Shown: positions 1 to 34,900, counted from the stretch's first letter. The stretch is 64,000 nt of DNA from Pavona decussata (GCA_977016875.1 CDRNST010000060.1:6262001-6326000); one strand, 5' to 3'. The notes: a model not told the origin generated them from the sequence alone. Numbers and translations are program-made.

Positions 1-253
1 TTCCCTTAGGCAAGGCACTTGATCACGCCATAGTCATCTCTCGATATTCATATCAATAATTGGGTAAAATAAATTATCAGGGAAACTGACATACTACTGA
101 GGTTTAGGGAAGAACTAACTACAGTCGGGTTGAAACAAGAGAAAATAATTTTCTCTCGGCTGAAAGCAATGCTTTCTGTTTACCTTATATGATATGGAAA
201 TCAGAAGTAAGCGTGCATATTGCGTCGTAAAAATTGACTTGTTTTGTTTTCAG

Positions 254-11826: not shown

Positions 11827-13922
11827 TCCTTAAGATATGCTTAAATTAGTCATGATCTAATGCTTTATTTCCTTCGTCGTGAGGAAATATCGAGCTTATT
11901 ATCTTGCGCAAATCTGGTTTCCATTATCTGCATCCTTTCAACCTTGTAAACCGCAGCAAATAACACATTGCGTTTATTTCGGCAATAATAATCATAAAAA
12001 TGCAATTTGTAATAGATGATTTACTTACGTACAGTTGTAATAATTGCCACGATGCTTGGATTCTGAGAGTTGTTAAAATTAGTCCGTTGTCTTTGAAATG
12101 AAATTTCACCTCCTATCGTCCCTCGAAATTTGACTTGATTAAACAAGTTGTTCATTTATGCATGGTGTAATGCAGCCTTTGAAATTAAATTATCAGAGTG
12201 TTTTAATTGAACTGGTTTTGTACTTAAAATAAAACTTTCTTTTATCCCATCGCTAGGTCTATCGGTAAAGCATTCAATGTCTGAACTCTTAAATCTCAGC
12301 TTACAGTTAAAATCATCATGGAGTAGCTCGGCACATCAAATTAAATTTATCAGAACTACAATCTCTTTTGATTGTGAATAGCAAAAACAAAATGCCAACG
12401 CCACTTTTTTTTAATTTTGTAAAATAATTGCCCAATAAATTGAAACATGACCGGCAAAATTTTTGTCATTGTACTGACACCCCGGGAATAAACTTGGATG
12501 ACTTTGCAGTGAAAACCATCAGTTACTTCATGTTACTTTGTCATTCCAGATTAATTTTCTCATATTACAGTTACTAGTCTTTTCGATGCGGTGTGAAATA
12601 TGGATTGCTTGACTGAAAAATCAGTAATTTTGATGTTAAAATGTTATAACTTTTTAGTCCGGAAGAAAGTAGTCTCCTTTTCCATTTCTACTGATTTAGC
12701 TCCTGATTTCAATCATGAGTGCCTTGCGTCAGTCATGTCTGATCATTTCAAAATATTATTGATTTTGGATCCCTGGTCGTAAATTGTCGTAAAAAGTGAT
12801 TCTTTGAAAAATGAGTCCTTTTGGGGTTTACATGTTATGATGTTACAAAAGTCCAGCGAACTGAAGGAAGCTTTCCATTCTCATTTCTCACATTTAGCTC
12901 ATGATCTTTAGGACCTTTAGTATTCATCGTTTTTTTTTAAATTTTCTCCGGGTAATCTGGTTTTCCATCTCCTCAAAACCCAACATTCCCAAATTCCAAC
13001 TCCATGCAGAATTTGAGGTCTACAGTTCTGCTAGTCTAAAAACTATATATGAAGTGCCACCTTCGTTCAAACGAAGGCGATTTTTTTTTACCCCTAACTC
13101 GGCTCGGAGTTCTTATCCCTTTAGCGACTAATGATGGGCTACTTTCTAACTTTTCTAACCCTTACCTTAGACTGTGATTCTTTTATTCTTGACAATTTCA
13201 CTCAAGGCAGTAGGAGAGTGCAAACTGAGGTTAAAAGAACAAAATTAAAAAGAGAAGTTTGTGCCTAAACTCCATATTGTTTTAAAAATATCGTCTTTCT
13301 GCGATAACAGTTATGCGATATATTCCATATCTTAGTTTTAGTTCCTTTTAATCTGCTCCTATTTTAACTGGCTTGTGTTGATTATATTAATTTTCCTTTT
13401 ATATTCCGATACTTTTAATGGTGTACATATATTTTTCCTTTTACCGTGATCAACTGAAACTCAAGTTAGTCTAGGTTACTCTTTTTTGCGCAGTTTATTG
13501 GTCGTTCGTTGTTGTTTTATTTGCTAATGGAAAGCTGGATAAAAAAGTGTTTGGCCAACAACATTTTACATTTAAAAACACTCAAAAAAATGACAAAATT
13601 TGTCATTTAAAAACACTCTTAAAGGTATCACCTGCCCTGAAAGACAAAAAACGGTATTACCATTTTCTCATGTATATGCATTAATAATGTACAGGATTTT
13701 ATGAGCAAATTTATGTTTTGCACAAAATAATACGACAAAGGAAAGTGCTAGAAGTATTTACAATGTGATATCGTCAAAGCCAGGACATGATTTCAGTAAC
13801 AGAAGCAAAAGTAACTTCTTGAGGTTGACATTCTATCAGGAATGTACAGTATGTGTAATTCAGCTTTTAGCTTTTTTTGATCCGAAGCATGAGTCATTTT
13901 GCTAAAGTACTTGTAAATTATA

Positions 13923-14055
13923 AGGGGTTAGTTTCTAAGGAAACTGAGATACTGCGTCGGTGGGGAATAGAAATGAATGTTTGGTTTTGTAAACAGAGTT
14001 AATAACTTAAGGTAAATTGGCCACCGTAAAGAAATTCAAGTGATGATGTTTCGGA
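13923..14055 (-). mobile_element. Penelope-like terminal-repeat fragment, same family
   Basis: Reverse complement of the 39790-39935 unit. Confidence 0.65.
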
Positions 14056-14810
14056 GTGAATCCAAATAAGTCAGATCTGAAAGTCAAGTTGTTAGTTCAG
14101 GCTGTCTGTTTACCATTGGAATTAAGATGTCGTAGGATTCGGTCCTATTATTAATAACAATTCCGGCTTCGCATCAACAAACAGGCAGGTATGCGTACGG
14201 CATACATCAGTAGCTGGTAAGAGCTGAATTTGTGTTCCCCAACGTATCGGGCAAAAATTTGTTCGTACAATTGGGGAGCAATTGTAATATCACTGCGTTG
14301 TGGCAATTTATTCATTGCTGTTTCTCTAGTGTAAAACCAAATCATCCGCCGTTCTTCAGCCAAGGCTTAGATTTGAAGTCCATCAGGTTAGCAAGCGGTA
14401 ATGGCTTTTTGTTTCGCATTTTTTCAAGTTGTTAATAAATTCTAGAAAAAGCTTTTAAGAAGTGAAACCGGAACATTGTAAATCTAGAAGATGACCAACG
14501 TCACTCTATTATTTGATTTCCTATTGCCGATGACAGAACTATTAATGATTGCTAGGATTATTCACTGTAAACAAAATTGCTTGTGCCCCTCTTTCGAAAT
14601 ATTCCTTTATAATTTTGTCAAAACGTTAATCGTTGAATATAATAAAGCATATTTGTCCTAATTTAAGTTTAAAATCGTTCAAATAGATCATTTTACATGA
14701 TTGTTGTAGATGGATGGGTATTTTCTATATTCCAGCGTTAAAGAATTCATCGGCCACATGGCAACTTTCGACTCATTCATAATTTGAAATAGCGGAATTC
14801 AAACAAATTC

Positions 14811-14811
<1 letters not shown>

Positions 14812-14860
<49 letters not shown>

Positions 14861-14886
14861 TATAATAATAATAATAATAATAATAA
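14812..14886. repeat. (TAA)n microsatellite
   Basis: About 25 units with one interruption; absent from the duplicate copy. Confidence 0.97.
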
Positions 14887-15160
14887 CCAGTTATCTCGGT
14901 AACTTATACAATGATCCAAGTTGTCCCTTGCAATAAAAATTTGAGTTATTACCCTGACACAATGTGGATGAAATTGCGTGTATACACACTTGCTACTATT
15001 TTCTCTGGAGATCAAATATTATTTGTTTATTTAGGTCTTCTCTGCCTTTTGTCGAATTCGAACAAAAGAACCGCTTGAGTTATCAATGTCACTCAATATT
15101 ATCCCAGCCTGCAACTTAGGTAGTCATGTGGTTTAACCTTTTTCAAAATTTTAATTTTAG

Positions 15161-15384
15161 TAGGATATCATCGACCGACACTCCGCTGCTTCAAGGTTAT
15201 CAAAACTTGACGGGTATTGACCCCCCCCACTGAGCAGATACCGAAATTTTGTCGTTAACGCTCTGGACGAATGTTCATATCAGACGACACACCAATGGAA
15301 AAAGAACGCGACATTGTGCGGCTTTAAAGTGGCTCCTCTCTGTGCTATTGATAACTGTTCCTTATGGAGGATGCTTTTGTCCAG
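15161..15384 (+). pseudogene. Duplicate of gene B signal-peptide exon with ATG shifted out of frame
   Basis: Near-identical to 16684-16921 with intact TAGTAG acceptor and CAG|GTTAGT donor, but ACCAATGGAAAAAG replaces ACCATGGCGAAAAG; no in-frame ATG after the in-frame TGA at 15231. Confidence 0.7.
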
Positions 15385-16830
15385 GTTAGTAATTACAACA
15401 GTTATATAAATAGAAGTAAGATTCGTTTCTTGCGCGGTCCTCTCTTTTCCTTTCTCGAAAACAACGCTTGTTACGGCTGGTCACGTGGCACCCAAAATCT
15501 TGATGCTTGACAAAATTTGTCCTTAGGGAGGGGTAGTAAAGAATGCAAATGTCGCTTTCTCAGAACGGCTCGAGAAGCCGGGGACTGCAAGTGGTTTTAT
15601 AACCAATCATTTCACAACTTGAATGCAGATTACAGATCATGTGACGATACTCAAGGAAGTAGTCTCTTAATTGGTCATATTCACGCTGGCATGCATTTTT
15701 TACTTCCAAAAAGACAAAGGGTCGATTTTCCTGAGAATATCACGTACTCTGTAATGGGCAATTTGCATATAGAGCGAATTAGGTCTATTCCGTCACATCA
15801 ACAGACAGCAAGCACATACGGCATACCTAACTGGTAAGTGCTGAATTTGAGTTAGAATATACATCAACATATCGGCAAAAATTTGTTTATACAGTCGGGG
15901 AAACAATTATAATATCACTGCGTTGTGGCAATTTATTGATTGCTGTTTCAATAGTGTAAAACCAAAGCATCCACTGTTCTACGATCAAGGCTTAGATTTG
16001 GAATCCCATCATATTAAAATTTTCAAGCGCGACCTCAGAAAATGTTAGCAAGGTAGCAAGCGGTAATGGCTTTTTGTCTCGCATTTCTTCCACGTGGTAA
16101 TTTTACAAAAATTCTAGAAAAAGCTTTTATGAAGGAAAATAGAAACATTGCAATTCATAAGATGGCCAACGTCTATGACAGGAAGTATAAAAGATTGCGA
16201 CGATCATTCGTTTACCTCACTCGAAATTTTCCTTTAAAATTTTGTTAAAACATTAATCGTTGAATGTAATAAAATATATTTGTACTGTTTTGATGATGAG
16301 CATGGATGAGTATTTTCTATATTCCAGTGTTTAAACAATTCGGGTAACATAGCAACTTTTAATTCATTCACAATTTGAGATAGCGGAATTCAAACAAATT
16401 CGTAACAATTTAACCAGTCACCTCGGTAACTTATTCAAAGATTCAAGCTGTCCCGTGCAATAAAAATTTGAGTTATTACTCTAACAAAAATCAGATGGAT
16501 GAACTTGCGTAGATACGCGCTTGCTAGTCTTTTTCTGGCGATCAAATATTCTAATTTTTTGGGTTTTCTATGCCTTTTGTTGAATTCGAACAAAAGAACC
16601 GCTTGACTTATCAATGCCATATTATCCCAGCCTACAACTTAGCTAGTCATGTGGCTTAACCTTATTTAAAATTTTAATTTTAGTAGCATATCATCGACTA
16701 ACACTCCGCTGTTTCAGGGTTATCAAAACTTGACACCCAAGGAGATATCGCGGGTATTGACCCCCCACTGAGCAGATACCGAATTTTGTATTTAACATTC
16801 TGGGCGAATGTTCATATCAGACGACACACC

Positions 16831-16921
16831 ATGGCGAAAAGAACGCGAAACTGTGCGGCTTTGAAGTGGCTCCTCTCTGTGCTATTGATAACTGTTCCTT
16901 ATGGAGGATGCTTTTGTCCAG
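16831..16921 (+). CDS. Gene B first coding exon (signal peptide MAKRTRNCAALKWLLSVLLITVPYGGCFCP)
   Basis: ACCATGG start context, basic n-region plus hydrophobic core, phase-1 donor CAG|GTTAGT matching the phase-1 acceptor at 20679; 91 coding nt, same as the gene C first exon. Not in the ORF track. Confidence 0.75.
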
Positions 16922-19900
16922 GTTAGTATCACAACAGTTATATAAATAGAAGTAGGATTCGTATCTTGCGCGGTGTTTGTAAATCACTTAAGACATAAAC
17001 ATGGTACATGTATACAGACTAGTCACAATTGTCCCCTTGTTTTAAAAGCAGCAATGGCCCAACAGAAAATGATTGATCCTTCCTTCCTGGAGTACTTTTC
17101 GTTATTGTCGTTGAACAGTGTACCTCAAGTAGACTGCTGATGCACGGCTTTAGTGTATCGAGAAGGCATTTCTTTGAATTATCAATAAATCATATTCGAT
17201 AGTTCACTCACAATTTTGTCACTAGGACTTGTTTCAAATATCAAGAATGTACTTAGCGCCATATAATTGATTTGGTAAATATCCAGACAGTAGATAACAA
17301 ACGAATACAATTCATTAAAATCTGCAGCTGAACGGACATACGTTCGTCCCGCTGATCTCGTGATTTTAGCACTTAAGTTGGGTGGCATTCATTTCTTGTT
17401 CAGCCGCCCTCTTTGACGTTAACCTAGAAAAACCTTAATGTCATCTGATCGTTTCCTAATTGGTGACCATTCAAATAAAAGTCTTGGAGCTGCTGTTCTG
17501 TTGGGCTTGTCGAGTATTCGATAATCTTTTTTTCTTATTATCCTTTCGAAATTAAATTGAAATTTTTTTTACTTTCGCCACGCAATGTCATGATGATACT
17601 CATTATGGCAAATTTATGCTCAAGGCAAGATAGAACTGCAAAACACGCAATTCTTCGGTGTAAGATTGAAGAAACTAATAATATTTTGGTTAAATTTGCC
17701 ATGTCTAAGAATGCAAGGCTACCAATGCTCATGGCTTTTTTCAGGAAGATGCTCATCCAATGTACAGCAAACAAACAAATAAATAAATAAATAATAATAT
17801 CTTATGCTCTGATCACTCTTACCGTTATCATAGATTAGGAGATTTCTAATTTGAGACAGTAAAAGAAAAAGCTTAAATGTCCTCCATCCTCTATCTAATT
17901 TCCATTAATAATAAGAACTTATGATGGTTATTTCAATTTGGGGAAAATTGGGAACTGTATTTCATAGCTTCAGCGGGAGGTTCGAAGTGTGATGAATATC
18001 ATTTATAAAAATTCGTGTTAAAACATTTGACTGTTAAGCAGCAATACGAACCTTAACTGAAATAGAAGTATAAAATCAGCGGAAGATATTTTATCGTATT
18101 TGTTTCTCTTATCATATTTCGTCCGTATCGTGCAGGTTTCTTGGACGCAAATTTAGTTTTGACTGCGTAGTTTTAACATCATGCAATTACCGTAGATTAT
18201 TGCGAGCATTCTTCTAAAATTAATCTGTCTTTACTTCACGAGTAGTGCGGAGTATAGTACAGATAAAAGAAACATTCGATTCTTTTGGCTTGACGGGTGC
18301 AGAAGAATCGAGGTTTTGAATTTAGGCGTTTTTTAAAGGATCGTCTTCTCTAATACAATTTTGAATGAGCCACATTATTTTGAACGAATTGCTAATTTAT
18401 TTTTAAAAGAAATGAATTTGCATACTTATTATTTGTGTCATTGACAAACGTCACATGCTTTACCAAAACACAATTTTTCAATAAGAGGAATGATTTTTAA
18501 CATTAAAAACAAACTTATTCTGGTTGTGTTATCAGCCTGGATTCTTTTTAAAGACGCAACTGGTGTTTTTCCATGCAATTGCGATCATTCGTACACTTTT
18601 CGTTACAAGTTGCTTTCGCAATAAAAATGTCTTACTTTTAACATGCGTTGGGTAAAACGAGGGGAAACTATTTTTTTTCTCTAATTTGTCTTATTGATTG
18701 CTCCGGCGGCCAGAGAGAGACTGTTCAATCTTTTCTCAAGTACATCTTCAAACAATATGCAAGAATATTCTCAAAATTAAATTAGGTAAACTTACTAAAA
18801 AACAAACAGTCTATATGAAAGCGAAGTCGAAGAGGACGGTATACAATATTATTAATTTGAACTGTCGTACTGTAGGATTTCATCCACACAGGCATGATTG
18901 AAATCAGCATGACTGCGCAACTTTCCAGGAAAGCACTGTCGCTTTGGTTAAACAGCATTAAAAGAAGTGCTGACTCATCGGCCGCTTTCAGGTTTAACAA
19001 TTTAGAATTTATCCACAACCCGATTTAAATACAGACAGTTAGAACCACCTCGTGCTGCATAATAACCTGCGCTACAGGGATTACTGATTACTGCTCAATA
19101 TTTCAACTTCAAAAATTATTCGAACGTTTTCCTTTTGGACAGAAGAAACTTAGAGAAAAAATTTCGGTTCTTCTTCGACAACATTTGGGACATTTTATAC
19201 CTGTCAAATTTCGAGTGTTTTTTGGTCAGTCACTCTTATTCTCAAAATGTTTCTTCAATATGCTTCCCAACACAACTAAAAATGTATTATTTATTGGTTC
19301 TAACGATGTTTTTTCTCCAAGATCTCTCTGGAGGATCTTAACACTAAAATAACAAGTAACATTGGTTCGGTCAAGGTTACAATCTATTATTCCTGTCTTT
19401 TCCAAGCCCTCTTGAATGGTTTTTCTTGATCAGAGTCGTTAGCTCATCTGGATGTATTGGTCGACGTTCATAAATGTCAGTGACATTTCAGACCCGGAAT
19501 TTAGACTGAAACACTTTGTGCCGTGTAATAATGAATCGGCAATATAGGATACGTTCTGTTTATTCAAGTGGTCTTATTATCAGATTTATTGGCACAGATT
19601 CAAAAGTAAGGAGCATCTTGTGCCGCCGCCCAATAAACGACATTACAGGAAAGTACTGGAAATATCTGAATAGTCACAGCTTTGTACTCCATAAAAACAG
19701 TATTAGCGTGAAAATGTTTTGTCGAGCAGCTTTCATTTACTCATGACAGGCTCAAGTAGGTTTGGTCCACATTAAACAGCGTGAGGTTTTATTGTCGACT
19801 CACACACATATGTAACTCTTAAAGATTTTTAGAGGCATGATTTTTTTAGGGGGAGCCGTGCATTGAAATTCCTCCCTAAAATAAACCAAAAAAAACTTTA

Positions 19901-22900
19901 TTGCATGGTTATTCTGCTATAATATTTTACGAAAAATTTCACAAAAATCCAACTAAAATGAACGAGGTAATAAATGTAAAGAAAACAAGAAAAGAATGAA
20001 AGACGTGTATCAATATACGTAAAATGTCAACCTGAGAAAACCACAACACTAAGAATTATTTCTGAAATGTACGTGGTTCTGTGACCAATCAGAAAGAAAG
20101 TCGTATCACAAGCCGAAAAAACTACAAAAATAATTACCGTTAGAGTTGTGTTTTTTTGCCTCTTGTATCTGATTGGTTTTCCTTCTTAACACAATAAACA
20201 TCCAAAAATATTTCTAATGTTCTAGTTCTAGTGTTCTAAATTTAAGCACCGGCTTTATCAATTTACAAAGTAATGATGTTCTTGAAAACTCCTTATAGAC
20301 ATTAATGTGCAAGAAGGGACAAAGAAACATAATGCTCCTCTCTCCGGTTAATGAAAAATCGGTTAAAGCTAACCTAGGATTGAAAGTCAAGCAAAGTATC
20401 TGTTTCTCTCGTTGAAGAGTGGTGTTTCCACCACTAATTTTAAGCTACACGTCGACAGCAGCTACTCTTTAAATGTAGCCAAAACGAGTTCACAGGAATC
20501 CACATCATTGCAGGTAGTCTAAGCCAAAATTCAAAACTTATACTAATTCTTGGTTAGCTGAAACTGGGCTTTGTTTTTTATTTACCTGTATGCAATAGTA
20601 AGGTATTTACCATTCTAGTAATAAAAATAGTTTGGAATTGGGCGAATAAAGCTAAAAACTGAACTTTCTTCACCGCAGATAAATGCAGCAAAAGTCTGGG
20701 TATTTCGGATAACAGAATTCGAGATAATCAAATGTCCGCGGAGAGTGCTTACGACAACGACTTCGGAACATTTGGAGCTCACCGTGCGAGACTGAACCTA
20801 ACAAGCTGGCCACCGGGTTATAGAGCTAATTATGAACCTCAGGGAACTTTTCTTTGGGTTAAGGTTAATCTGGACGAGAGAACGGTGATAACAGGTATTG
20901 CTACGCAAGGTTATGGTAATTCGACCGCGGCAGAGTGGGTATCTGTGTACATGGTGTTTTACCAGAAAGGAAACGAACTTGCTCTTCTCACCGAAGCAGA
21001 TGGTGAAACGGCAATGGTTAGTGCTAAGTTAATAATTTTGTTGACTGCCATTGATTTTTTTAACAGAACAATTTGCTTAATTGAAAAGCTTTTATATTCT
21101 GGTCTACTTTTATTTACTATTTTTATTGCCTTGATTTTAAAATTAACTAGTGATTAGACCAGACCAGGTCTTGGCACACTTTTTCGATCATATATGATAA
21201 GAGATATTAACATGACTTAAGGTGGCTGAACACAGTTTGCGCGCGCTTTACAGATTCTGTTAGTGATGCTATTAAGCGCGCGCTAGGGTTGTGGTACGTA
21301 AATACGGCGGTCGATAAAGTGATCCCTCAATTTCACATGAAATGGATAATAAAGGTAAGTTTTGATCCTAAATAACTAAGTTTCCTGTTTCTGGACTCTT
21401 TTTCTTTTCTTTCCGAGCAAAAAAGTAATTCACCGAGACCTTTTGCATGCTTTTCAACTTTGCCATGAAACCCAATTAAAGCCACGCATGCGCATTTGAC
21501 CAAAAAATTGCGACTGGTTGTTTTCGTGCAAATGAACTGTTTTCTAAGGAACTGCTCATTAGAATTTCGTAAAATTTGGCATGAAAATAGTTCCCTAAAA
21601 GCGTAACTCGCCTACAAAGAGAAACCTAAATCTAACAGAGGATATCTTCACAAAACATTAAAATGCAAAATCAATATTTACAGGAGATCTGTTTGTTAAA
21701 ATTACATGAAAATAGTGCAACTGTGTCAGTGTTTTGTGTGTTTATCTGGATACAAAAAATGGAAAAAATCTAATGAGTACATTTTCTAAAAATAAAGGAA
21801 ACCTACAATATATGGACGTTTAATAGTTCGCTGCGTTGCCATGGAAATGGTACTTAGCTCGACAAGACGTACAAAAATCCATTCTTTCTTAGTTAGTCTT
21901 ACACCATACCAAATTTGGGCGCCCAGAAGTACATAGTTTCCAAATAACGTCTTCTAACACCTGTACACTAAAAAACTGTATTCGGCCACCTTAAAGTGCC
22001 TATGAAGCGAAAATTGTCTTTAGGTGGTTATAAAATTTACCCTTTCAAACACGGGATTTCAAAGTTTGAGATTGCTGGGGTAAAAATTGCCGATTTTGTG
22101 AGCGCTCAAAGTTGGGCTATTTTGCCTTCAAAAATGGCATTTGAATCGCGCCGCCACAATGCCAGGTGACAAGAATTGCAATTCATCATGGCGGAAGAGA
22201 AGAAAAATAAGCGACAGCGAGGGCTATATTGCGTTGCTGGCGTCCGTAACAAAGAGAGTTGCCAGAATTGATCGTTCACCGAATCGCTAGACATGCTTTT
22301 CTCTTTCTACAATCCTTTTCGGCGGCCAGAACGGAATGAAAGTAAACACCCTTTTGGCACCAACGCGACGTCACAACTTGGAATACAGCATAAAACTCGA
22401 CCCAGTCCTCTGACCATTTTTGAAAGCAAAATAGCTCAACTTTGAGCGTTTGTAAAATCTACAAGTTTTACCCCAGTACTCTTAAACTTCGGAATCGTAT
22501 ATGTTAATTTTATAACTACACAAAAACAATTTTCGCTTCATAGGCACTTTAACATAGCTGAGTATTTTTTCTCTCACAGTCGACATGGCAATTCAGATTG
22601 TCAGTAAGGAGAAACTAGACGATGATGTCCTTTGCTGACCATTACTAGTTCTTCTTCCTGCACTCATTGTCATTCTTTCTCTCCTTTTGCAGACGTTTAT
22701 TGGCAATTTTGACACAAGTTCTATTCAATACCGTGAATTACCTTTTCCTGTGGTGACCAGGGAAGTGATGGTTTATCCAACAGCTTGGAATAACAACTGT
22801 GCTTTGCGAATGGAACTTTATGGATGCAAGCCAGGTTGGTATTAATCATTGTTAATTTAAAAATGGCCTTCAGCTGTTTTTCTTGTAGTTCTCAAAAGTC

Positions 22901-25900
22901 CCTAACATGCATTAAAAAAACTCACCTAGTATGCTTGCCTCATAGTTATTTCCCGTACTCCTACCTTTTAATATGAAAAAAGTCGCTAGCCTTTTTGCCT
23001 CGTTTCCAATAATTCTGACATTGTAAGAAACCCATGTTATGGTCAGTTTGGTGAACATGGCATGCTATTTTATGAATAAAGGGGTTAGTTCAGTTCTAGA
23101 GAAACTGCTTCGTCGATGTGGGAGTAGAAACATATATTTGGTTTCATGAACTGAATTGATAAACCAATCTGTCCATCGTTAAGAGATTAGAGTGCTGACC
23201 GGTTTCGTACGTTAGGTCCTTGCTAGGACGAATCGATCGAAACGTCAGCACTGGAATCTCTTTACGGTGGCCAAATTATCTTATCAACTTAGTTGATAAA
23301 ACCAAATATTAACTGATTGAAAAAATATGCAGCCCAGTTTGCAGTGTCATCTTCTTACCAACTTGTCAAGTTTATAAGTTGATAAATATCTGTTGTAATT
23401 ATTAAGAGGCCTGATTTTTTGCAAGAAACCAATGCAAAAACGACAAGAACAACAACAAATAATCAACAAACAAACCAAAAAGAATTCAAATCAACTAATA
23501 ACATTGTTTTTTCCACAGAGTTCCATTTTGTGGCTTGGATTACCATATCGAACTCTCGTTTCACATTGGCGTATGCTGACAACAGGAGTGAAGCTTATTT
23601 GGCTTTGGAAAAAGAAATTATTGTTGAGGTACAAATGTAACGATACATCCCCAGACCATGCTTGATAACCCGCAAAAGAGACGGCTTTAAATCACATCTC
23701 CTTACTCCTTTTCTTGTTCTTAAGCTCAAAAAATAAAACAAAATTAACCTTGAACGAGGCAAGAAAGGCTAATTTAAATGCAAACAAAATAATGTCAAAT
23801 ATTCTTCATTTTGGAATAAGATTTATATAACTTCAGTTCATCACTTTTCAAATTTCAGCTCTCTATTTACAAAGCGTCAGCTACGGTGTTTCTATTTTAC
23901 CAATCCCGACAGCTGGACCAATCCTGACAGCACTCTAAGTACCAGGTGTCTCGTCTCCTTTTGATTTTCTCTTATTCCATAACACCCAGTGACGTCATAC
24001 GGCTTGCACAGAGTTCCCGCTGGTTTAAAAATTAATTTATACTGTATTTGCTGTCAGCGAGACTTGTTCGTTAACGTTGTTTGTCTAGGGCTAGACAAGA
24101 AGAAATCAAGAGGGTTTTTACAATAACTGTCAAAATTCCCTATAAGAGTGCAGACGTCATATTTCCCGCGCGGGGTTTCTCAACGGAAAAGAAAGCTAAT
24201 TCAGCTCGTACTTTATCCATGTTATTGTAAAGAACAAATCGACGGCAATTTCTATGCTCTATGCTCTTTTATACCATAAAATGACGATTTAAAATGTACA
24301 AAACTTGGTAGTGAAACCACTTGAGCTTTGAACATATGGTGTTTAGCATACCTCAGTGACCGACTATCGCGTAACGCGCAATCTGATTGGCTACACAGGT
24401 GCCGTCTGTCGATCGATAGACGGCAGTTTGTCAGCGCACGCGCGATTTAGCATGCATCATTGCACAAATATATCAAAATTTATGAAATAAAAATATTCTT
24501 TTGCTTCATAGATCGATCACTGAGGTATGTTAAAACAATTAGACGGCTCGCTCTCGGTTTCTATCGCCTTTGATAGTTGGCTCGGGGCTTCGCCCCTCGC
24601 CAACTATCAGCCGATAGCAACCTCAAGCTCGCCGTCTAATTGTTAAATAGACCATAGAAAACTGCCGTTGATTTGTTAATATTATATGGAATGTTTGATT
24701 CATTCGTTTAATGATACATTTGAGACGTTTTATCTTTTCTTATCCAGGTGACGGACTTAATGGGTCTAGTTCCTGGATTTCTTTATGCTGACTTGCGCAC
24801 ATTTAGGTAAATTAAGAATTTGAAAATGATTTGACGCAGTTTATCATCAACAGGATGAAAGACACATGAAAACACCAGTCAATTTGTTAGATGTAAAAGT
24901 AAGACTTGATGGTCGAAGAAGTGAGAGTCATCGGTGTACCGACGTGTAACCCTACGATAATAAAGCACTGATCACAGAATGGGTACGACGAAGTTCATTT
25001 TGATTGCCAAGGACAAGTTACAGCGAGGAATAATACAGAAGAAGTACGAAGATCATAAAATTAAATAGGCAACGAAGGCTAAAGAAACTAGAAAAGAGTA
25101 TTTATTTAGGTTTCCTCGTCATTCATCACATGTTCTCAAGTTAAAGCATGGATTTAGTGGACGAGTTTATTCATTCAGCTCTTTGAATGTTGAGATACTG
25201 CTTGAAAGATCGCTTGAAAGTGGCAATATTAGGCGAACTGATAAGGTCATAGGTAACGAATTCCAGGTCTTGGGACCCTGGTGGAGAATTGTTAATTGTT
25301 TTATTTTGGTTCTACAGTGGGTAGCAATATTTTTCCTAGTTCGAATCCACTAAAAAAACAAACAAACAAACAAACAAACAAACAAAAAAAAAACAGATTG
25401 CTGCAGATTCACTGATCACCAGCTACAGATTAGATTCGCACATCTGTCTATAGCCGACAGGTCATTTTGTTTATGTGTTTAGTCCACAGATGTTTGCGTC
25501 CAAGCTGATTATGGCCGCAGAGATCAAGATTTATTGCATACAGTCAAAGAAGAATGATGTAGCCGAACAACTTAAAAAAAGCATTCAGAATGGAGATTCC
25601 ACTGTTTTGGACGAATATCTCAATACAGAGGACCGCTGTAAGTAAAGAATATCGTGGGCTCATAGCACGTCGTTTACCGCGTGAGAACTGTAACCCTATA
25701 GGCTCGTTTTAACTATTAAAGCCTAACGCCACAAGTTTTATAGTTCCTCTTTGGGCGGCCATTTTTCTATCTAGCATATGTTTTATATTAATATAACTGA
25801 ATTTATTGACTATTGGAGTGAGGCTTATGAGAATTGTACGATGGCCTTTTAACCAAGAGAACCCATGGCTAACCAGCTTTGCTATCTCATTCAGTTTCAA

Positions 25901-28900
25901 GCTGAAGACATGGACTAGAATATTTCTAAGATAATTTAAGGGGTGAAAATTTACAAGGATGTTTCAGCTAAACGCAACCTTTTATCCCTTTTAGTTGATT
26001 GTATGTGCGACGTCCCCACAGTCGCGACGGAACTGAAAAAATCCTTGGATGAGGCTGCTGTTGTTTACACCAATAAACTGTTTTTTCTTCGAGCAACATT
26101 GCGAGACAACTGCAACACTCCTAGTGATTACAAACTTTACTGGGAGGTATGCAGATGTGACGAAGGCACTGGGATGTGTGACCCTGTAATTAAATATGGA
26201 GGTGCTTGGAAGCCAACCAAACCAAAACTGCTTTTTCCGAGACTGTTCCGTGGGACTGGCTACCTTTACATTCGATGTCTTTTCAAAACCAGTGCACAAG
26301 ACAAATTGGAAGTAAAGTCATACGGTTATGGATACCTCCGTCTTGTTTTACCACCGCTTGTACCAAGAATCATCGGCCCTTCTAGCGTGGTTAGAGGAAA
26401 TTACACCTTTGTTACGCTGGACGCTTCTGAAAGTTACGATCCCGATAGAAAGCCAATGAAAACAAAGGGAATGTCCATAAATTGGTTTTGCAAAGAAGAA
26501 AGCGATGACCACGAGGAACTGCCAAGGGCAGTGGAAGAACGTCCGGGATCGCTAGAACTTCTTCTTAATTTACAGAACTTAAAAGGAAACAGGAGTTACG
26601 TCTTCCAGCTTGTTATTCAGAAGGGAGATAGAACCGCACAAACGACTCACAAGCTTAGAGTTAACGAACCTTTTGTTTTCACTATTGGGTGAGTGGGGAA
26701 GAAATCATTGTTTTGTTTCTCAATTTTTGTTAATTCTAAATTCTCCCTATTCCATTCTCCTTAATACTTATGACGTAGACATGGCGTGCACTTGGTTTCT
26801 CTCTAGAGTTTGTCCATGCCACCCCTCTTAATTTTGTTTGTTTGTTTCTTGGTGCTGTTTTTGCTGTTTTACCGTAGTTGATGTATTTTTCAGTTTTTCA
26901 AGAAGTTGCGCCTCGCATGGGTCTTGCGTCCCGTTCGCAATGACCCAGTTGGTCTCGTTCACGTATTTTTGTATCTCTTGTTATTTTTTATTTTATCTAT
27001 GAATCTGTCAATCAATTTATTGATCTATGTTTTCATTTGTTTATTTTTCTGCTATGAACGTGTCCAATAAAGGTATTAAATACAGTACGATGGAAATTGC
27101 AAAATTGTGAAACTTTGCTCGGCGTCATTATACTTTCTTTTACTTGTTCGGCTTGTTATTCCTGCGATACACCTGAATGTTTGAATTGTTACGTAGGGTT
27201 AACCTCTTAATTCTCGTGCCCTCTTTGTACGTGTCCTGTAATATCTGCATCTTGAATAAAGTATGTATGTATGATAGTCTAATAGAGGAATGCTTGTAAC
27301 CTTTCTGCGTTTGTAGACCATTTTCAAGTTCCAATGTGGATATGCTTGTCATGGATCTTATATGGAATAACATCATTTAAAAATCGTCCCTCTGTGCGAT
27401 CTTCCATTGCAAGCTAGTATTTGCCTTTTAGTGTTGGTTCTAGCATTTCAAAATTATATATTCATTTCGCAGGTGCACCTCAAACTGTGGTTCCAAAGTA
27501 AGCGCTAACCAGCGGTTCACCTTAAAAACCTCGTGTTCAGGCCTGTTCTGCCACAAAATCTACAAATACAACTGGGTACTATTTCATCAAAAAACCTCTG
27601 GAGACAGGGACTGGGCAGAGGTACCAAACTTTGAGGAGAACATACTGACGGATATTGACAGTCCAAATTTGGTTATACCGAGCGACAAACAGATTTTGCA
27701 GGAAAGGAGTGAATATAAGATTCGAGCGGTTGTGACACTTGATAATGGATTTACGATCGCGGAGGAAATGGCGTTCGTAACCAACTCTCCTCCTCATGTT
27801 TCAGATGGGCGAAGTGGGTGCTCTGTGACTCCAAGTGAAGGGATTGTTCTTACTACGGAATTTAATATCAGTTGCTCAGGGTGGACGGACGATGATCTCC
27901 CATTAAATTATGAATTCAGGTCAGTTATACTGATGCTATTTATGGTGAACCTGTTCCAACATTGTCTCAAACAAATACACTATCACTCACTCAGTCGCTT
28001 CCTGACTCCACTTTGTCGTAACATGTGACACAAATGGTCAAATGTCTCCCCCTTCCGCCACTGTATGTTACCTATCGGTTTCTGGCGACGTGGCATTCTG
28101 GTTCGCACCAAGGACAGCTTTCGGAACGAGGCTTGACTAGAAGAATTGATACTCCACCCGGATGGTTGGAGAGAGGATTCTAGTCTACCATCCCCTATAT
28201 AACTTTCCATAAAAGCGCTTAAAACAATGTCCTCCCAATTTGAGTCATTTAATTCGAGGCTTACGACTAGCCTCAGATCCCCCAAAACCAATCGATATCG
28301 AGCCACTGTCGGTAGTAAAATTATTTTGTTGTTGTTCAGATATCAGACTGGTTCAGGAATTTTGGTGATTAACAATGGACCTCCTTCAAGTGCCATCGCC
28401 CGACTGCCTCTTGGGAACATAACAGTTGAGGTTCGAATATCGGACTCACTGGGTGCCTCTATTGTACAGCAATTTCTAGTGCAGGTAATTATATCTCAAT
28501 AAGTCTTATGTTAGCTGGGCAGAGGTTTGCTAGTTCTCTGTGTTTTGCCTGATTGAGGTCCTGTCCGTTCTTTTTCCTATTTTCTAAGCCCTCCTGAATC
28601 ACTGTGAAAAATCAGTGACANNNNNNNNNNNNNNNNNNNNNNNNNNNNNNNNNNNNNNNNNNNNNNNNNNNNNNNNNNNNNNNNNNNNNNNNNNNNNNNN
28701 NNNNNNNNNNNNNNNNNNNNNNNNNNNNNNNNNNNNNNNNNNNNNNNNNNNNNNNNNNNNNNNNNNNNNNNNNNNNNNNNNNNNTAGGTGAAGCAGATAC
28801 CTGCACACGACATTTCTCAAGTTATAAAATCGTCTGCATCAGAAGGGGACAGCCAGCTTAGCCAACTTGTCAACGGAGGAAAAGTCGACCAAGCGGCGCA

Positions 28901-31900
28901 AATGGCGTATTCTATCCTAACCGCTGTAGAGGAAGCTGATGTAGACACTAACAACAAGCGAGAGGTGTGTTTATTGTTATCTTATTTTAAGTTTTATTTT
29001 GTCAGAGTCCCTTGGGTTGCTATGTCACCACATGCAAACCAAGCAGTTTCCCTTGAGCAGCTATAACCCGAGACGCTTTGCCGGTACACCCGGAAGTAGA
29101 GCGAAGCAATGTAGAGCATGTCCAACTTAAGTGTGGTGTCAGTGTGATCAGCACTGTCTTGAATTCATCCAGGCTTGTTGTCCTTCAGAAAAGAAATTTG
29201 AGTTGCCAGGAATAAAGTGCAAAACCTCGACTGGATTTGAACCCATGACCTCTTGGCCGATTATCACTAATGCTGATTTAAGTGTAAAAACAACCCCTAA
29301 GTTTGAAAGAGTTAATTATGTTTCGAAAAATTGCCACTAGGCTCTGGATATCATTCTAGTGTTGAAAACAAAAATTAAATTTAGGTAGATGGTAAAAATA
29401 AGGATCACCCCAAATCCTCGTTCACACTGTTGAAAACACTACAATGTAGGGCAAAGTTTATTCTCTAGGGATTGACAAAAGAGGTTTCGAACCTGCTACT
29501 GTATCCATTTTATCGTGAACACTGATAAATAACTCAGGATAAGCAAAGTACTGGTAAATATTAAATTCACTGACTTATTTCATGCTTTGTTCAGTTGAAG
29601 AAAACCATACTGGAGCAGATAGCCACTGTGGAGGTCCAAAGCTTACAACAGGTCACTCAGTTGTCAGCGGTTGTTGTCATGGCAACCAAAGGAAATGAAG
29701 ACATCGCAGTGTCATCCCAGGTGTGACATATCTTCTACAACAATCATGTTTTTTCGTCTTCAGAGCAGTATTGGAAAGTTACATTGTTAAATAAGGATTT
29801 ATGCGATCGGTTTGTTCATTTCTCCTTCTAATTCGAAGTAAAACCAAATCGAACGTACCCTATTTAGTATTTTGAAGTCAGGGCTACTAACTACACTAAA
29901 GCTTAAATATCATGGTGTTTTTAATTTCCTGTTAATTTTAGAAAGATGTAGTCGGTCTTTTAGACAACATGACTGACTTCATAAGCTCTCAAGTCAGAAG
30001 CGAGGGAATGGATGTTGAGTTGGTTCAGGACGTCGGAGGGAGCCTCCTTCAAGGAATGTCTAATACGCTCAGCACTTCCGCTCCTCGAGCAGGAAAAGAT
30101 GCAGAAACAACCGATAGAAAGGACGAGGCACTGGATGGAGACGTCGAGGTAGAGAGAAAGCAGGTAAGACCACATTTGAACGAAGTCTTGGGCTGATAGC
30201 GAGTGAGGATTAACAGCTTTATTGACAACATCTAGCAAGGTCACTTCCAGAAGTTCTCAAATGTTTTAACTTGTTTCTCGCACAGAACAAACAAATCGCC
30301 AAGAAGACGCTTCATCTTATTAACCAACTAGGAACCAGTCTCCTGGCAACCAAGGTACTTGGTGAGAAACCAAGCGTATTTGCTACAGATAAGTTGTCAG
30401 TGACGATTGATCGACAGACGCCAGTCAAAATGTCCGGAAAGACGTTAGGAGGAAGAAAAGAAAGAGTCACATTACCATCTGCAGAGACCCTCTTCGGACC
30501 TGACTCTACAAAGCTGTCATCTGTGGACGCTCAGGTACGAACTCAAGCTGATATTTAAAACCATGTTTGTGGATTTCTTAGTTGCTTTCGATTTGAAGGC
30601 AGTACTTTGAGCTAAAAAAAAAAAAAAAACATGCAAAAACGTTTTAGTGCTCATTGTAAGGGTAATGTGTCTAACTTTCGCCATAAAGCCAATCTGAACG
30701 TTCAGTGGCCTTATTCCTGAAGGGCTTATAATCAGAAAAAAGTTTAATTCTGAGATTAAGGACTTAAGAATTTAGCAGCTCTGTTTTTTGGATTTTGTGA
30801 GACATATTGTAATGTTGTTCAATTGGTATTTCACTTTTATCCAAATCTTTTACGGTTGTATTTGGCATCCCTAACCTGTGTCAATCAGAAAAGCAAGAAT
30901 GCCCCGTAACGGTAATTTTCTTTGCGATTTGGTTACCCATCCGGTAGATTGCGGCATAAGTAATGTAAACTGACAGGTAACAACTGCAGATAAAAATTGA
31001 CAATGGCGTCATCATGACACCGAAACATGTTTTTTTATCGTTAGTTTTCAGTTGTATTTGCATTAGTAAATCGTCATGGATAAGTTATGTGTGAAACTGG
31101 TACCAAAGTCTGTGCGCCTAACTGTGCTCAGATACTAGGAATCGGAAAAAAAATAAAAAAAAAAATCACTTTATTTAAGTGTCAATGTATTTAGCACAGA
31201 GCACTAATTGGGGAAACTTTTCAATTGAATTGGAATTTAGAAGTGTTGGTTTTTGAGGAGAGGGGAAAACCGGAGTACCCGGGGAAAAACCTCTCGGAGT
31301 AAGGACGAGAACCAACAACAAACTCAACCCACATATGACGCCGAGTCCGGGAATCGAACCCGGGCCACATTGGTGGGAGGCGAGTGCTCTCACCACTGCG
31401 CCATCCCTGCTCCCCACAAGAAGACATAATGAAGACATAATGAATGCCACTCTTGAATTTTTAATGACAGATGACGTCTTTTAAGGAGAACCCGTACACT
31501 TGGGATGAGAGTGCCAAAGGTATCCAGTCGTCAGTGGTGGATTTTAGTTTAAAGAAAGAGGATGGAACTGCTCTTGAAGTCTCCAACCTCAAGGATCCTG
31601 TGGAATTATTCATACCTGTGACTCGACAACGCGAAAAGGGCGGAAACGCATCCGAGGAAAATTATTTTGCAAAACCAAGTAACGGCTCTAACAACCTACG
31701 ATATCACCGAATCAATATTCCGTCGGCGAATACCATCATCTTCTTTGAGATTAAGCCTGAACAGGGTGAGCTCTTGGAAATTTTTGTCAGAGCGCAAAAG
31801 AAGCCAACATCAAGTGAATACCAGTATAGAACAAGAGTTCCGGATTACTCGTCTTGTTCCGCGCACTCCAACAGCACTGGGTACCACAACTGCAGTAATA

Positions 31901-34900
31901 ACCCTTACGAGGTCACGATGTCCAGTGACATCACCGGCAAAACAGGACTTCACTATATTGGGATTATGTTTGCAGCAGACAAGAGCCCACAAACAAGTAG
32001 GCGGGTTGCTCGATCGTGTGGAGGGCACGGAGGCAGACAAAAGAGGTCTTGCATTGGCGTAAAAGATCCCCCAACCACCCCTCCCCCCACACCGATAATC
32101 GTTATTCCGCAGTATGACGAAAGTACTGACGTGAACTACACCATGTCTGTAACGGTGACGAGCTGTCTGTATTGGTCTGAGAAGAAGCAGTCATGGACTA
32201 ATGAAGGTTGCTCGGTAAGTTTTCTAAATTGCTCTTTACTATCCTGGGTCACTTGATTATCACCGGTATATCGATGGACAGGGTCAACTAGCGCTCAGAT
32301 GGCAAATTAGTCTCTTGATATTATTGAGGCGCGTCACTTCGGTCTGCTGTAACGTTTCTCTTGCGTGGCACAACAAACATAATCCAGAAGACTGTGGCCT
32401 TGAAAGTAAAAGGCCAGCGTACTTTATAAAGGCGAAATCGAAGGATATGGGAGGTCTGTATTGGGAAAAACTGTACCTGAGGTCTTGAGTACGGCCCTCG
32501 GTCGGCGGCCTCTGCCGTACTCAATACAGAGGACATAAATCACACAGCAAATCCGCCCGGGTTCGTGGACAAGATCGAAAAATTTCGCCCGCTGACGGAA
32601 CCAATCAGATTGCATGATTTACATAGTTCTGCCCGCTTGCGCACTAAGAAAAAATACAGAACGGTAACTTGGATATTACAAAGTAAGACTTACAAAGTAG
32701 AAGAGCGAAGGGCATTTCGTAAAATCAAATTGTGCCCCTATAGAGCAGCTCAAAACTTCTTATCGCTACAAGTTGCTATTGAATTTACCTGAAACAAGTT
32801 TAAACTTTTCTCTCTATACTAATGAGAAATTCAAGTAGTTCTAGCTGAGACAGAGCTGCATATGAAAGTGAAATGTTTCTACTTACTATTTTGTGATTTT
32901 AGATCGGACCTAAAACGAGATCTGGAAGTCTGCACTGTCTCTGTACACACCTCTCTGCATTTGGTGGGGATTTCTTTGTAGCGCCAAATCCAATCGATTT
33001 TGACAAAGTCTGGGAACAGTTTGGCAAACTGGGGGAAACTGGAAACTTCGTCGTGCTAGCGACCGTATGCTCTATATTTGGTGTATACGTCTTGGGACTG
33101 GTTCTCGCACGAAGAGTGGACAAGCTTGATGAACTGAAGGTGAAAAATTGGTTTTAATATTGCTACCTTATTAAGCAAGAGAGCATGTAATTAGTGTTTA
33201 CCAATAGGTAACAAAGCAGCTTTAATGTTGAGAGAATTTTTCATGACTGTACTAGTAATCTTGCCTAGGTTTATTGTAGTTTGAAGTCTGTCAGAAGTCG
33301 AGGAAGGAAGAAGTTGAATGACCTTGGCTACATATACCAGAAACCAGATGTCCAGAGCACATAGCTGCCTTGATAACCTGGTTTCATCATACGGGATGAC
33401 ATGGCCGGTCTAACGAAGCTGCGCTTGGTGTATCATTACTTCCATGCTTGTAGAACTGGCTCTGTAAAGGAGCATGTGTGAAGGGTTAGTGTGGCTACGG
33501 TACAGGGACCCGGTTCGCAGCCATAACAGCCTATGCTGCAAGATCTTGTACAGACAAGGGATTCATCGCTGGACTGAGATGGTGCTGCCATGTTTTTTGA
33601 AAGTATCAACGTTGTCCAGCTGTGTGCCATCGATTATTATCATGCAATCTATGGCGATGCTAGGTTAAGTTACCACATTGAACTAAAGTCATTAAAACAG
33701 CTTCAGATAAAATCGTTTGGGTTTTCAACCCTGTTCTGGGGATAATCTCACCCTGGATGTGAAGAGTCACATCCTGGGAATTGGGGCTAATTTTAAATAG
33801 GACAGTTGCCTAAACTCCATGAGGAAATCTGCCTTGTAACCCGACGTTTAGTTATAATACAGTTTACGACAGCAGTGTTCATGCTTTTCCCCCAGGACTT
33901 TGCACTGATGAAACCAGTTAATATTGTAAGAACAGAGTTATCAAAGAGGCTCGATTGATTCAGGTGTTTGCTTAATTCTCACCAGGTGGTAGGAAATGTG
34001 TACTTAAGTGATAATGATCACTCGACTGGGTGCGTCTACAAATTGCACGTGCAGAGTGGAATGTGGAAAAATCAAGGAACAACAGCGCATGTGGGAATTA
34101 CGTTATACGGTGAGGATGCCTGCAGTGGTCCAATCTCACTGTCAGATTCAAGCTCCCGAAGGATATTATTCGCTCGTGGTAGCGTGAATAGCTTTATCCT
34201 TTCATTACCCTACTCACTTGGCCGGCTGTTCAAGATACGTATCTGGCATGACAACAGTGGCGAAAGTCCAGCTTGGTTCTTACAACAAGTTGAGACAGAA
34301 GATTGTAGCACCGGAAACATTGGACACTTCATTGCCAACCGGTGGCTTGCACTTGAGAAAGGCTCTGGGAAAATCGAGTTTGAAATCAATGCTGCGGGAA
34401 AGAAGGAGCTTGCGAAGTTTAAGAATTTGTTTGTGTTTAGAACCGCGAGAAGCCTGGGTGATGGGCATTTGTGGCTTTCTGTGTTTACCAGGCCACCTCA
34501 TGTGTCATTCACTCGGTGCCAGCGGTTATCGTGTTGTCTATCAGTCTTGTTCACTGCCATGGTAACCAACTGCATGTTTTACAACTTCGGTGCAGCACCA
34601 CAAGACTCATTTCAAGTCGGGCCTTTGAAACTGAGCTGGACTCAAATTAAAATCGGTATCCAGAGCAGCCTGATCGCAATTCCGATTAACGTGTTGGTGG
34701 TGATGATCTTCAGAAACGCCAAGCAAAAATCACAGGAGAACGTGTACAAAGTAAGTGTAGAAGAAACTGAAGAGAAAGCACCGGGGTGCCTGCCGCACTT
34801 CTTTATTTACATCGGCTGGGCATTGTGTATTTTGACATCGCTAACTGCTGCAGCCTTCACAGTATTCTACAGCATGATGTGGGGTAAGGAAACATCGAAC

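Follow-up and report, generated by a model that had tools for sequence, protein, structure and literature searches.

In a window of 64,000 nucleotides from the coral Pavona decussata (GCA_977016875.1 CDRNST010000060.1:6262001-6326000), we find three tandem polycystin-1-like genes on the plus strand: the 3′ part of gene A, then gene B and gene C. Genes B and C are very likely tandem paralogues within an old polycystin-1-like (PKD1L/PKDREJ-type) receptor-channel subfamily of stony corals and sea anemones, whose extracellular tip is made of one discoidin domain (FA58C) and one SEA domain of non-cleaving appearance. We are more confident still of the anatomy of B and C, that is, of the domain order and of its encoding by one gene.

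Architecture of genes B and C

Pfam matches, splice sites and intron phases agree on one FA58C domain, a three-exon SEA module and then REJ in both genes, which is the order proposed by the initial annotation. The outer limits given there coincide exactly with splice sites (Table 1): FA58C exon 1 has its acceptor at 20679 in B and 44496 in C, and the third small exon has its donor at 25637 and 49479, respectively. The string of intron phases is identical in the two genes (1/FA58C exon 1/0/FA58C exon 2/1/SEA exon 1/0/SEA exon 2/2/SEA exon 3/1/REJ). Both FA58C and the middle module are therefore flanked by phase-1 introns, again as first described, and each is 1-1 symmetric. Over its three small exons the middle module measures 324 nt in B and 327 nt in C (~108 residues).

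Most of the small exons had been reported as missing from the track of open reading frames (ORFs). For the second small exon this holds for a simple reason: it sits in an open frame of 28 codons, and the floor of the list is 30 amino acids. Other acceptors for the first small exon, at 23426 and 23483 in B and at 48274 in C, were rejected, since the ttccacag acceptor common to both genes (at 23519 and 48290) restores phase 1.

Window exons were compared singly, and tests of contiguous modules used natural orthologous proteins. For gene B, the single exons submitted to Pfam were taken as 20666-21007, 22690-22836, 25982-26683, 27471-27950, 33983-35278 and 37303-38742.

At the tip, the two FA58C exons jointly cover positions 4-73 and 86-127 of the discoidin profile (PF00754) in B as in C. 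The family cut-off is 28.2 bits: each half in B scores below it, C exon 1 reaches 41.6 bits, and the contiguous domains of a Stylophora protein (P0128) and a Desmophyllum protein (P0105) reach 48 and 55.8 bits, respectively. Both disulfide cysteines are kept, within K-C-S-K-S-L-G and L-Y-G-C-K-P in B and within N-C-R-S-P-L-G and L-Y-G-C-D-S in C.

By sequence, the tip of P0128 matches chains of factor VIII, factor V, neuropilin, lactadherin and retinoschisin, with E values down to 2e-35. For structural comparison we used a 695-residue AlphaFold2 model of P0128, built from a 47-row alignment in which the window exons stood as separate rows. Residues 30-193 of this model match factor V C2 (Z 15.8), neuropilin b1b2 (Z 15.7) and DDR1 (Z 15.5), with DDR1/2 at Z 15-16. 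The ligand class of the coral discoidin domain cannot be read from these sequence and structure matches.

Judged by profile homology and by a predicted fold, the middle module of B and C is a SEA domain, non-cleaving in appearance. Pfam SEA (PF01390) is the sole recurrent family among the translations of the first small exon and matches 4 out of 12 of them, in register with profile positions 1-35. The E values are 1.1e-4 (22.8 bits) for L014, an assembly of another species, 0.009 for L025, 0.056 for L017 and 0.092 (13.3 bits) for B.

A stronger signal comes from comparison with 18 genuine single-exon SEA domains that the Pfam SEA model finds in this coral genome. Using hhalign, the module of seven contiguous orthologues aligns with these domains over columns 3-100 versus 6-101 (Prob 96.5%, P 9.3e-10, score 55.3). 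In the controls, 100 column shuffles gave a maximum score of 16.8 and the reversed profile gave 12.3. The first-exon alignment, which includes B and C, also matches the coral SEA domains (Prob 91.4%, P 9e-7); the third-exon alignment alone gives no significant match to them.

In the model of P0128, residues 194-300 have a predicted local distance difference test (pLDDT) score mostly of 84-95, with a drop to 66 in the final ten residues. The succession of strands and helices (strand 195-202, helix 217-234, strand 240-253, strand 256-267, helix 269-284, strand 291-296) corresponds to β-α-β-β-α-β, a ferredoxin-like sandwich. When the model was searched against 48,161 representatives of the PDB, all matches to the SEA range were SEA domains: murine MUC16-like SEA (1ivz, Z 11.9), mouse transmembrane protease SEA (2e7v, Z 11.3, root-mean-square deviation 3.2 over 98 residues), human MUC16 SEA5 (7sa9, Z 11.3, deviation 2.5 over 108 residues), another SEA domain (8gkl, Z 11.0) and TMPRSS6 SEA (9nrc, Z 10.9). 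The SEA-like nature first suggested for the three-exon domain is thus borne out by profile-profile homology together with the predicted fold of this orthologue.

Other searches were less informative. The three nearest clusters in an ESM Atlas language-model search were the same SEA clusters for Stylophora P0128 (residues 192-304) and Nematostella P0127 (residues 182-297), two queries highly divergent in this module; the scores of 0.88 and 0.86 lie under the 0.9 line, and we take the result as a lead only. A profile of the first small exon gave nothing useful against PDB sequences, whole P0128 found discoidin chains only among them, and a word search limited to the SEA module returned the query alone.

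Beyond the tip, the remaining domains are those of a polycystin. REJ (PF02010) spans positions 68-448 of 452 in Desmophyllum P0105. The REJ module had been called short; it is near full length against the Pfam model, and the description holds only relative to human PKD1. The GPS is intact in both genes (C-T-H-L-S-A-F-G-G in B, C-N-H-L-S-A-F-G-G in C, with cleavage at HL/S predicted from the motif) and is followed in each by a transmembrane-like (TM-like) segment; the scan by exon also gave a GPS trace near 32200 in B. A simple hydropathy scan yields 1+5+5 = 11 TM-like segments, with PLAT after the first. PKD repeats, WSC, LRR and C-type lectin domains have no Pfam match in any B or C exon, nor in the orthologous proteins P0105 and P0128.

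Genes B and C are colinear at the protein level and not at the DNA level. A DNA comparison between them matches only a few exon pieces and one intron repeat, beyond which the introns have no similarity. At the protein level, identity is 38% and 51% for the two FA58C exons, 27% for the first REJ exon, 52% for the PLAT-TM exon and 43% for the channel, and three short blocks between FA58C and REJ are conserved in the same order. This pattern suggests that B and C are paralogues of long standing, with the greatest divergence in their outer parts. The intron repeat, ~100-200 bp long, links 36850-37068 in B with several copies in both orientations at 46515-47025 in C (86-94% identity).

Transcripts, gene models and family spread

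To see whether the tip is joined to the polycystin body, we compared positions 20400-26399, which cover gene B only, with contigs of four runs from four studies (one recorded as RNA, three guessed to be RNA). The splice from 21016 to 22693 is present in two runs from two studies (X5 and X9), and RNA contigs end or join precisely at 21016. In a third run (X6), the contig of record 16 carries 60 nt 5′ of 20679.

Further downstream, X5 record 13 and X9 record 30 contain exactly 25483-25637, the third SEA exon, and then run on both sides into sequence unlike the adjacent introns. The X5 contig is 440 nt long at a depth of 5.43, with 255 nt before and 25 nt after this exon. Its binned depths of 0.87, 2.28, 0.05, 3.32, 1.03 and 0.14 fit 22749-22834 + 23519-23628 + 24748-24806 + 25483-25637 + 25995-25999. 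The fit compares each bin with 5.43 times its expected bases, allowing for a few ambiguous bases at the joints, and is our own arithmetic rather than a set of joints listed by a tool. This makes a good but indirect case that the contig runs from FA58C exon 2 across all three small exons and reaches the REJ exon. Junction support from RNA, to which the initial annotation had pointed as a check, is thus direct for 21016 to 22693 in B, and the other joints are seen only through contig ends and binned depth.

Within the introns of B, the stretches 21200-22600, 23200-23400 and 24200-24800 show contig depths from hundreds to tens of thousands with many loose ends. These stretches are repeats, either expressed or abundant, and probably transposable elements.

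Independently made gene models of seven other species fuse FA58C to REJ and, where complete, also to GPS, PLAT and the channel. They are Desmophyllum pertusum KAJ7384753.1 (P0105), Stylophora pistillata 'PKD1L2' (P0125) and LOC111339299 (P0128), Pocillopora damicornis pdam_00003501 (P0126), Oculina patagonica 'polycystin-1-like protein 2' (P0139), a model of Porites evermanni, Actinia tenebrosa LOC116305596 (P0140), and Nematostella LOC5520843 (P0127) and LOC5520842 (P0138). In the assemblies of two further species (L013 and L014), all six exons are found in the same order. Within the P. decussata genome itself, an FA58C exon lies 3-7 kb 5′ of a same-strand REJ exon at no fewer than 12 loci, and in the majority the three small exons lie between the two. 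Our HMMER search with the first REJ exon gave mostly exon-sized ORF fragments of unannotated assemblies; full-length relatives were reached via the Desmophyllum cluster member.

Trees of the PLAT-TM exon place all cnidarian rows in one clade (97/96). Gene A, which is 88% identical to Oculina P0139, pairs with it (100/99) and then with two anemone proteins (about 90), and this position suggests that the subfamily and at least one split within it predate the divergence of corals and anemones. The nearest non-cnidarian matches are PKDREJ-like and PKD1L2 proteins, and a metagenome scan with P0128 returned no relative.

The two Nematostella models are numbered consecutively as genes of a single record. 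The names, and only the names, suggest that a tandem arrangement of FA58C-SEA polycystins is common to anemones and corals.

The 1-1 phase class of both tip modules fits an assembly by exon shuffling, and the phase-1 outer boundaries recur in a non-polycystin FA58C gene of this genome. The genuine SEA domains identified here each occupy one exon, unlike the three-exon SEA cassette of B and C. As the layout is common to corals and anemones, any shuffling event would be older than their split. The proposal that exon shuffling created a distinct receptor class is therefore partly retained: the phase-1 boundaries are compatible with it, and the class is not peculiar to this locus, being an old coral and anemone subfamily already contained in automatic models.

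Polycystin paralogues with other tips also occur in the genome. At C6:1019000-1028999, on the minus strand, EGF_CA, VWA, EGF, EGF_CA and VWA exons lie on the same strand and 5′ of a REJ exon, which suggests a VWA-EGF tip for this copy. Both this paralogue (PLAT-TM exon L049:7680-8909) and another on C214, whose tip has no Pfam match, fall outside the FA58C-tipped group of the tree. In assembly L013, a Pao-type retrotransposon (protease, RVT_1, integrase) at 12886-18692 sits inside the orthologous polycystin gene, just 3′ of the second REJ exon.

Table 1. Features of the three tandem polycystin-1-like genes, in window coordinates.
Feature	Position	Strand	Evidence and remarks
Gene A, 3′ part	about 248-5043	+	
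Gene B	about 16.8-38.9 kb	+	
B probable first coding exon, signal peptide	16831-16921	+	ATG, hydrophobic run, phase-1 GT donor at 16922
B FA58C exon 1	20679-21016	+	PF00754 positions 4-73, E 4.4e-6; phase-1 acceptor, phase-0 donor
B FA58C exon 2	22693-22834	+	PF00754 positions 86-127, E 4.5e-5; phase-1 donor
B predicted SEA exon 1 (β1, α1)	23519-23628	+	ttccacag acceptor, as in C; Pfam SEA positions 2-33, E 0.09
B predicted SEA exon 2 (end of α1, β2)	24748-24806	+	PGFL motif block versus C, E 1e-5; phase 0 in, 2 out; kept in L013 and L014
B predicted SEA exon 3 (β3, α2, β4)	25483-25637	+	phase 2 in, 1 out; 55% identity to L014; RNA contigs
B first REJ exon	25995-26688	+	Pfam REJ positions 59-198, E 8e-19
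B second REJ exon	27471-27950	+	Pfam REJ positions 209-351, E 1.6e-26
B GAIN/GPS exons and first TM-like segment	31468-32217, 32903-33142	+	tblastn to Oculina P0139; C-L-C-T-H-L/S-A-F-G-G, then TM-like segment
B PLAT and five TM-like segments	33983-35266	+	Pfam PLAT (PF01477) E 2.6e-16 at exon start; hydropathy scan
B polycystin domain, with the final five TM-like segments (channel-like)	37258-38904	+	Polycystin_dom E 5e-22, PKD_channel E 1e-39; hydropathy
Gene C	about 44.5-61.6 kb	+	
C FA58C exon 1	44496-44827	+	PF00754 E 1.6e-10; splice phases as in B
C FA58C exon 2	47530-47671	+	PF00754 positions 86-127, E 6.5e-4; 51% identity to B
C predicted SEA exon 1	48290-48405	+	colinear with B exon; same acceptor motif
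C predicted SEA exon 2	48904-48962	+	42% identity to B over 24 residues, E 1e-5; phases 0 and 2
C predicted SEA exon 3	49328-49479	+	block colinear with B, E 4e-4; phase-1 donor at 49479
C first REJ exon	49811-50492	+	Pfam REJ E 8e-16; phase-1 acceptor
C GPS (C-L-C-N-H-L/S), PLAT-TM and channel exons	57225-61645	+	tblastn to B and Oculina P0139

The phase-1 donor of the probable first coding exon of B is compatible with the phase-1 acceptor at 20679. This signal-peptide exon is duplicated (15249-15389 and 16786-16926); both copies retain a gttagt donor, and only the second has the in-frame ATG, at 16831. In the REJ region of B, a run of Ns at 28621-28784 lies directly 5′ of the exon 28788-28967. 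Stylophora P0128 aligns continuously across this run (residues 542-594 and 594-653), and little or no coding loss is apparent.

Competing readings

One competing reading concerns the behavior of the SEA domain. It could form a second breakable joint at which a protease, cutting in the β2-β3 loop, sheds the discoidin head under force. Furin cuts this loop in Notch2 and in human GPR126 (PMC6954182), and gene C carries a minimal R-x-x-R furin-type motif at the same loop, R-R-F-R within the K-F-R-R-F-R that spans its exon 2/3 junction (48904-49479). The loop reads R-F-R-L-S-T-D in C, T-F-S-P-Q-M-F in B and F-S-P-Q/E in most members, and R-x-x-R is absent from B, from A and from the orthologues. 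The G/SVVV autoproteolysis motif is absent from the β2-β3 loop of every member, and so no SEA autoproteolysis is expected; genuine coral SEA domains of this genome do carry G-S-V. We consider a breakable SEA joint unlikely, and we retain a SEA domain of non-cleaving appearance as the preferred description.

Another possibility is that B, C or both are decaying copies of the family that no longer give a working receptor. A second tandem array of FA58C-SEA-REJ genes, at C35:2.96-3.16 Mb and near gene A in sequence, has in-frame stops in FA58C, SEA and REJ exons and is probably a decaying array of pseudogenes. In addition, expression of B is low, and B and C are very divergent from each other (27-52% identity). 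Nevertheless, every exon mapped in B and C is open, the splice sites, GPS motif and channel domain of both genes are intact, and B is spliced in RNA contigs. When B is compared with its L014 orthologue, only exons align at the DNA level, and the ratio of nonsynonymous to synonymous substitution rates (dN/dS) is well under 1, at 0.12-0.26 for the FA58C, SEA and REJ exons (dS exceeds 1 and the values are rough). Based on this comparison, all tip exons of B are under purifying selection. Decay of B or C is thus quite unlikely, and working genes remain the better reading.

The middle module, for its part, might be the first sub-domain of REJ, or another ferredoxin-like fold that merely resembles SEA. 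Such sandwiches are common, and for a model of 695 residues a Z near 11 is no unique proof. Pfam SEA always stays below its cut-off, and the second half of the module has no sequence signal. On the other hand, the profile homology to genuine coral SEA domains (P 9e-10) has clean controls, the structural matches to residues 182-302 are all SEA domains and span the whole domain, and the Pfam REJ model begins only ~95 residues into the next exon. A fold other than SEA is accordingly improbable to a high degree. The least credible alternative is that the FA58C exons, either alone or together with the small exons, form a separate gene for a small secreted discoidin protein that merely lies 5′ of the polycystin gene on the same strand: over 100 FA58C exons occur in the genome, the majority within unrelated genes for secreted proteins or receptors, and the only splice listed as a joint lies within FA58C, but no in-frame stop exon follows the phase-1 donor at 22834, the 255 nt that precede 25483 in X5 record 13 exceed the 169 nt of the two upstream small exons (the depth of the bin 22800-22999 fits FA58C exon 2), the parts are fused in the gene models of seven species, and the pairing of FA58C with REJ recurs at no fewer than 12 loci with constant order and spacing.

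Several points nonetheless weigh against a discoidin-SEA polycystin subfamily of old standing. Four of the five tip joints, all but 21016 to 22693, come from depth arithmetic and are not listed as joints. The runs are represented by contigs at depths of 2-6, three of the four are only guessed to be RNA, and they support B, with nothing for C. None of the 12 first-exon translations reaches the curated Pfam SEA cut-off of 26.4 bits, which is expected, since a single exon encodes no more than a third to a half of the domain; whole orthologous proteins also have no Pfam SEA match, the third small exon matches no Pfam family, and the C-terminal half alone gives no significant sequence signal. For the fold, the evidence is a model predicted for an orthologue and not for B or C, and the discoidin part of that model is only moderately confident (local pLDDT 40-80). 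Finally, the nine FA58C-tipped rows group together in the PLAT-TM tree with moderate support (80/86), and this tree left out the classical WSC-PKD polycystins of cnidarians, which limits the statement on age.

Relation to known receptors and possible function

Described relatives of polycystin-1 carry LRR, C-type lectin, SUEL, WSC, EGF and PKD repeat domains (PMC1934368). Among cnidarians, the characterised coral skeletal REJ protein (PMC4890752) and Nematostella polycystin 1 (PMC8846589) are of the WSC-PKD type. Human PKD1L2 and PKDREJ and the sea-urchin SpREJ family (PMC1934368) resemble B and C in REJ, in the HL/S-T of the GPS, in PLAT after the first TM segment and in the polycystin and PKD_channel domains; their 11 TM segments correspond to the 11 TM-like segments predicted for the coral proteins. 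They differ from B and C in the stretch between signal peptide and REJ, where the coral genes carry one discoidin and one predicted SEA domain.

The automatic coral and anemone models have the same order as B and C (FA58C, a module of ~105 residues, REJ, GPS, PLAT, channel). They are unnamed or named by similarity, and their precomputed Pfam lists lack SEA. In the annelid Owenia fusiformis, protein CAH1779438.1 (P0077), an N-terminal F5/8 type C domain stands on a REJ protein, as in B and C; PKD repeats and no SEA lie between discoidin and REJ, and the model has no membrane part.

Outside the polycystins, the closest functional analogue is the adhesion G-protein-coupled receptor (GPCR) GPR126 (ADGRG6). 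Its ectodomain is CUB-PTX-SEA-HormR-GAIN, and the SEA domain, unseen by sequence annotation, was revealed by structure (PMC6954182). ADGRF1 and ADGRF5 also combine SEA with GAIN (PMC6954182). GPR126 places a ligand-binding head, a SEA domain and a self-cleaving GAIN domain ahead of the membrane, an order that B and C would share. These receptors differ in being GPCRs with seven TM segments and in having a SEA domain cleaved by furin or at GSVVV, whereas the coral proteins have 11 predicted TM segments and both motifs are absent in most members. The best matches to the discoidin tip, namely DDR1/2, neuropilin b1/b2, the C domains of factor V/VIII and lactadherin, have the cysteine pair in common with it; unlike the coral tip, they are coupled to kinase or soluble functions.

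Among papers pairing polycystin, REJ and discoidin in the searched literature, none concerns this protein family. There, 'SEA domain' and 'REJ domain' were not found together, and polycystin occurred with 'SEA domain' only for fibrocystin. The architecture is already present in automatic models of RefSeq, GenBank and UniProt, with no SEA annotation, and is undescribed in the searched literature. It represents a variation of the ectodomain within a receptor family already known, and not a new kind of system.

Discoidin relatives bind lipids, glycans, collagen or peptides; in mucins, in Notch and in adhesion GPCRs, relatives of the SEA domain serve as force-sensitive joints. By analogy with polycystin-1, adhesion GPCRs and discoidin proteins, the discoidin barrel of B and C would be a distal ligand-binding head, with a glycan, a lipid or a collagen-like partner. 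The uncleaved SEA domain would be a compact spacer or hinge between this head and the β-sandwich stalk formed by REJ. The chain may be cut at the GPS with its parts staying together, and a ligand or a pull at the head could then shift the 11-TM part, probably joined by a polycystin-2-like subunit, into a different state. We put roughly equal weight on the discoidin domain being a ligand-binding element and on its not being one, and any particular ligand is much less probable. A coupling of discoidin binding to channel function, as first proposed, would likewise follow from analogy.

The faster evolution of the ectodomain relative to the membrane part, together with the tandem arrays, suggests that recognition at the tip has diversified. 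On a more speculative note, the FA58C-SEA polycystins may be recognition receptors specific to corals and anemones, whose tandem, fast-evolving heads, with turnover of pseudogenes, bind glycans or lipids of gametes, prey, symbionts or microbes. This idea is tentative, and we regard it as rather doubtful. If true, the heads would exert direct control over the gating of a polycystin channel, in cells of a sensory or secretory type, and the system would be a cnidarian counterpart, made of different parts, to the REJ system of sea-urchin sperm.

Our analysis overturns nothing and describes a moderate variation on the modular theme of polycystin ectodomains. It adds a so far unannotated, predicted SEA domain to at least 10 public protein models. 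How large ectodomains of the polycystin-1 type sense is unsettled, and the variety of their tips is among the few handles on this question. In this subfamily of corals and anemones the tip appears reduced to two compact and well-understood modules, discoidin and SEA. Such a small expressible head would be suited to ligand screens and parallels the CUB-PTX-SEA-GAIN arrangement of GPR126.

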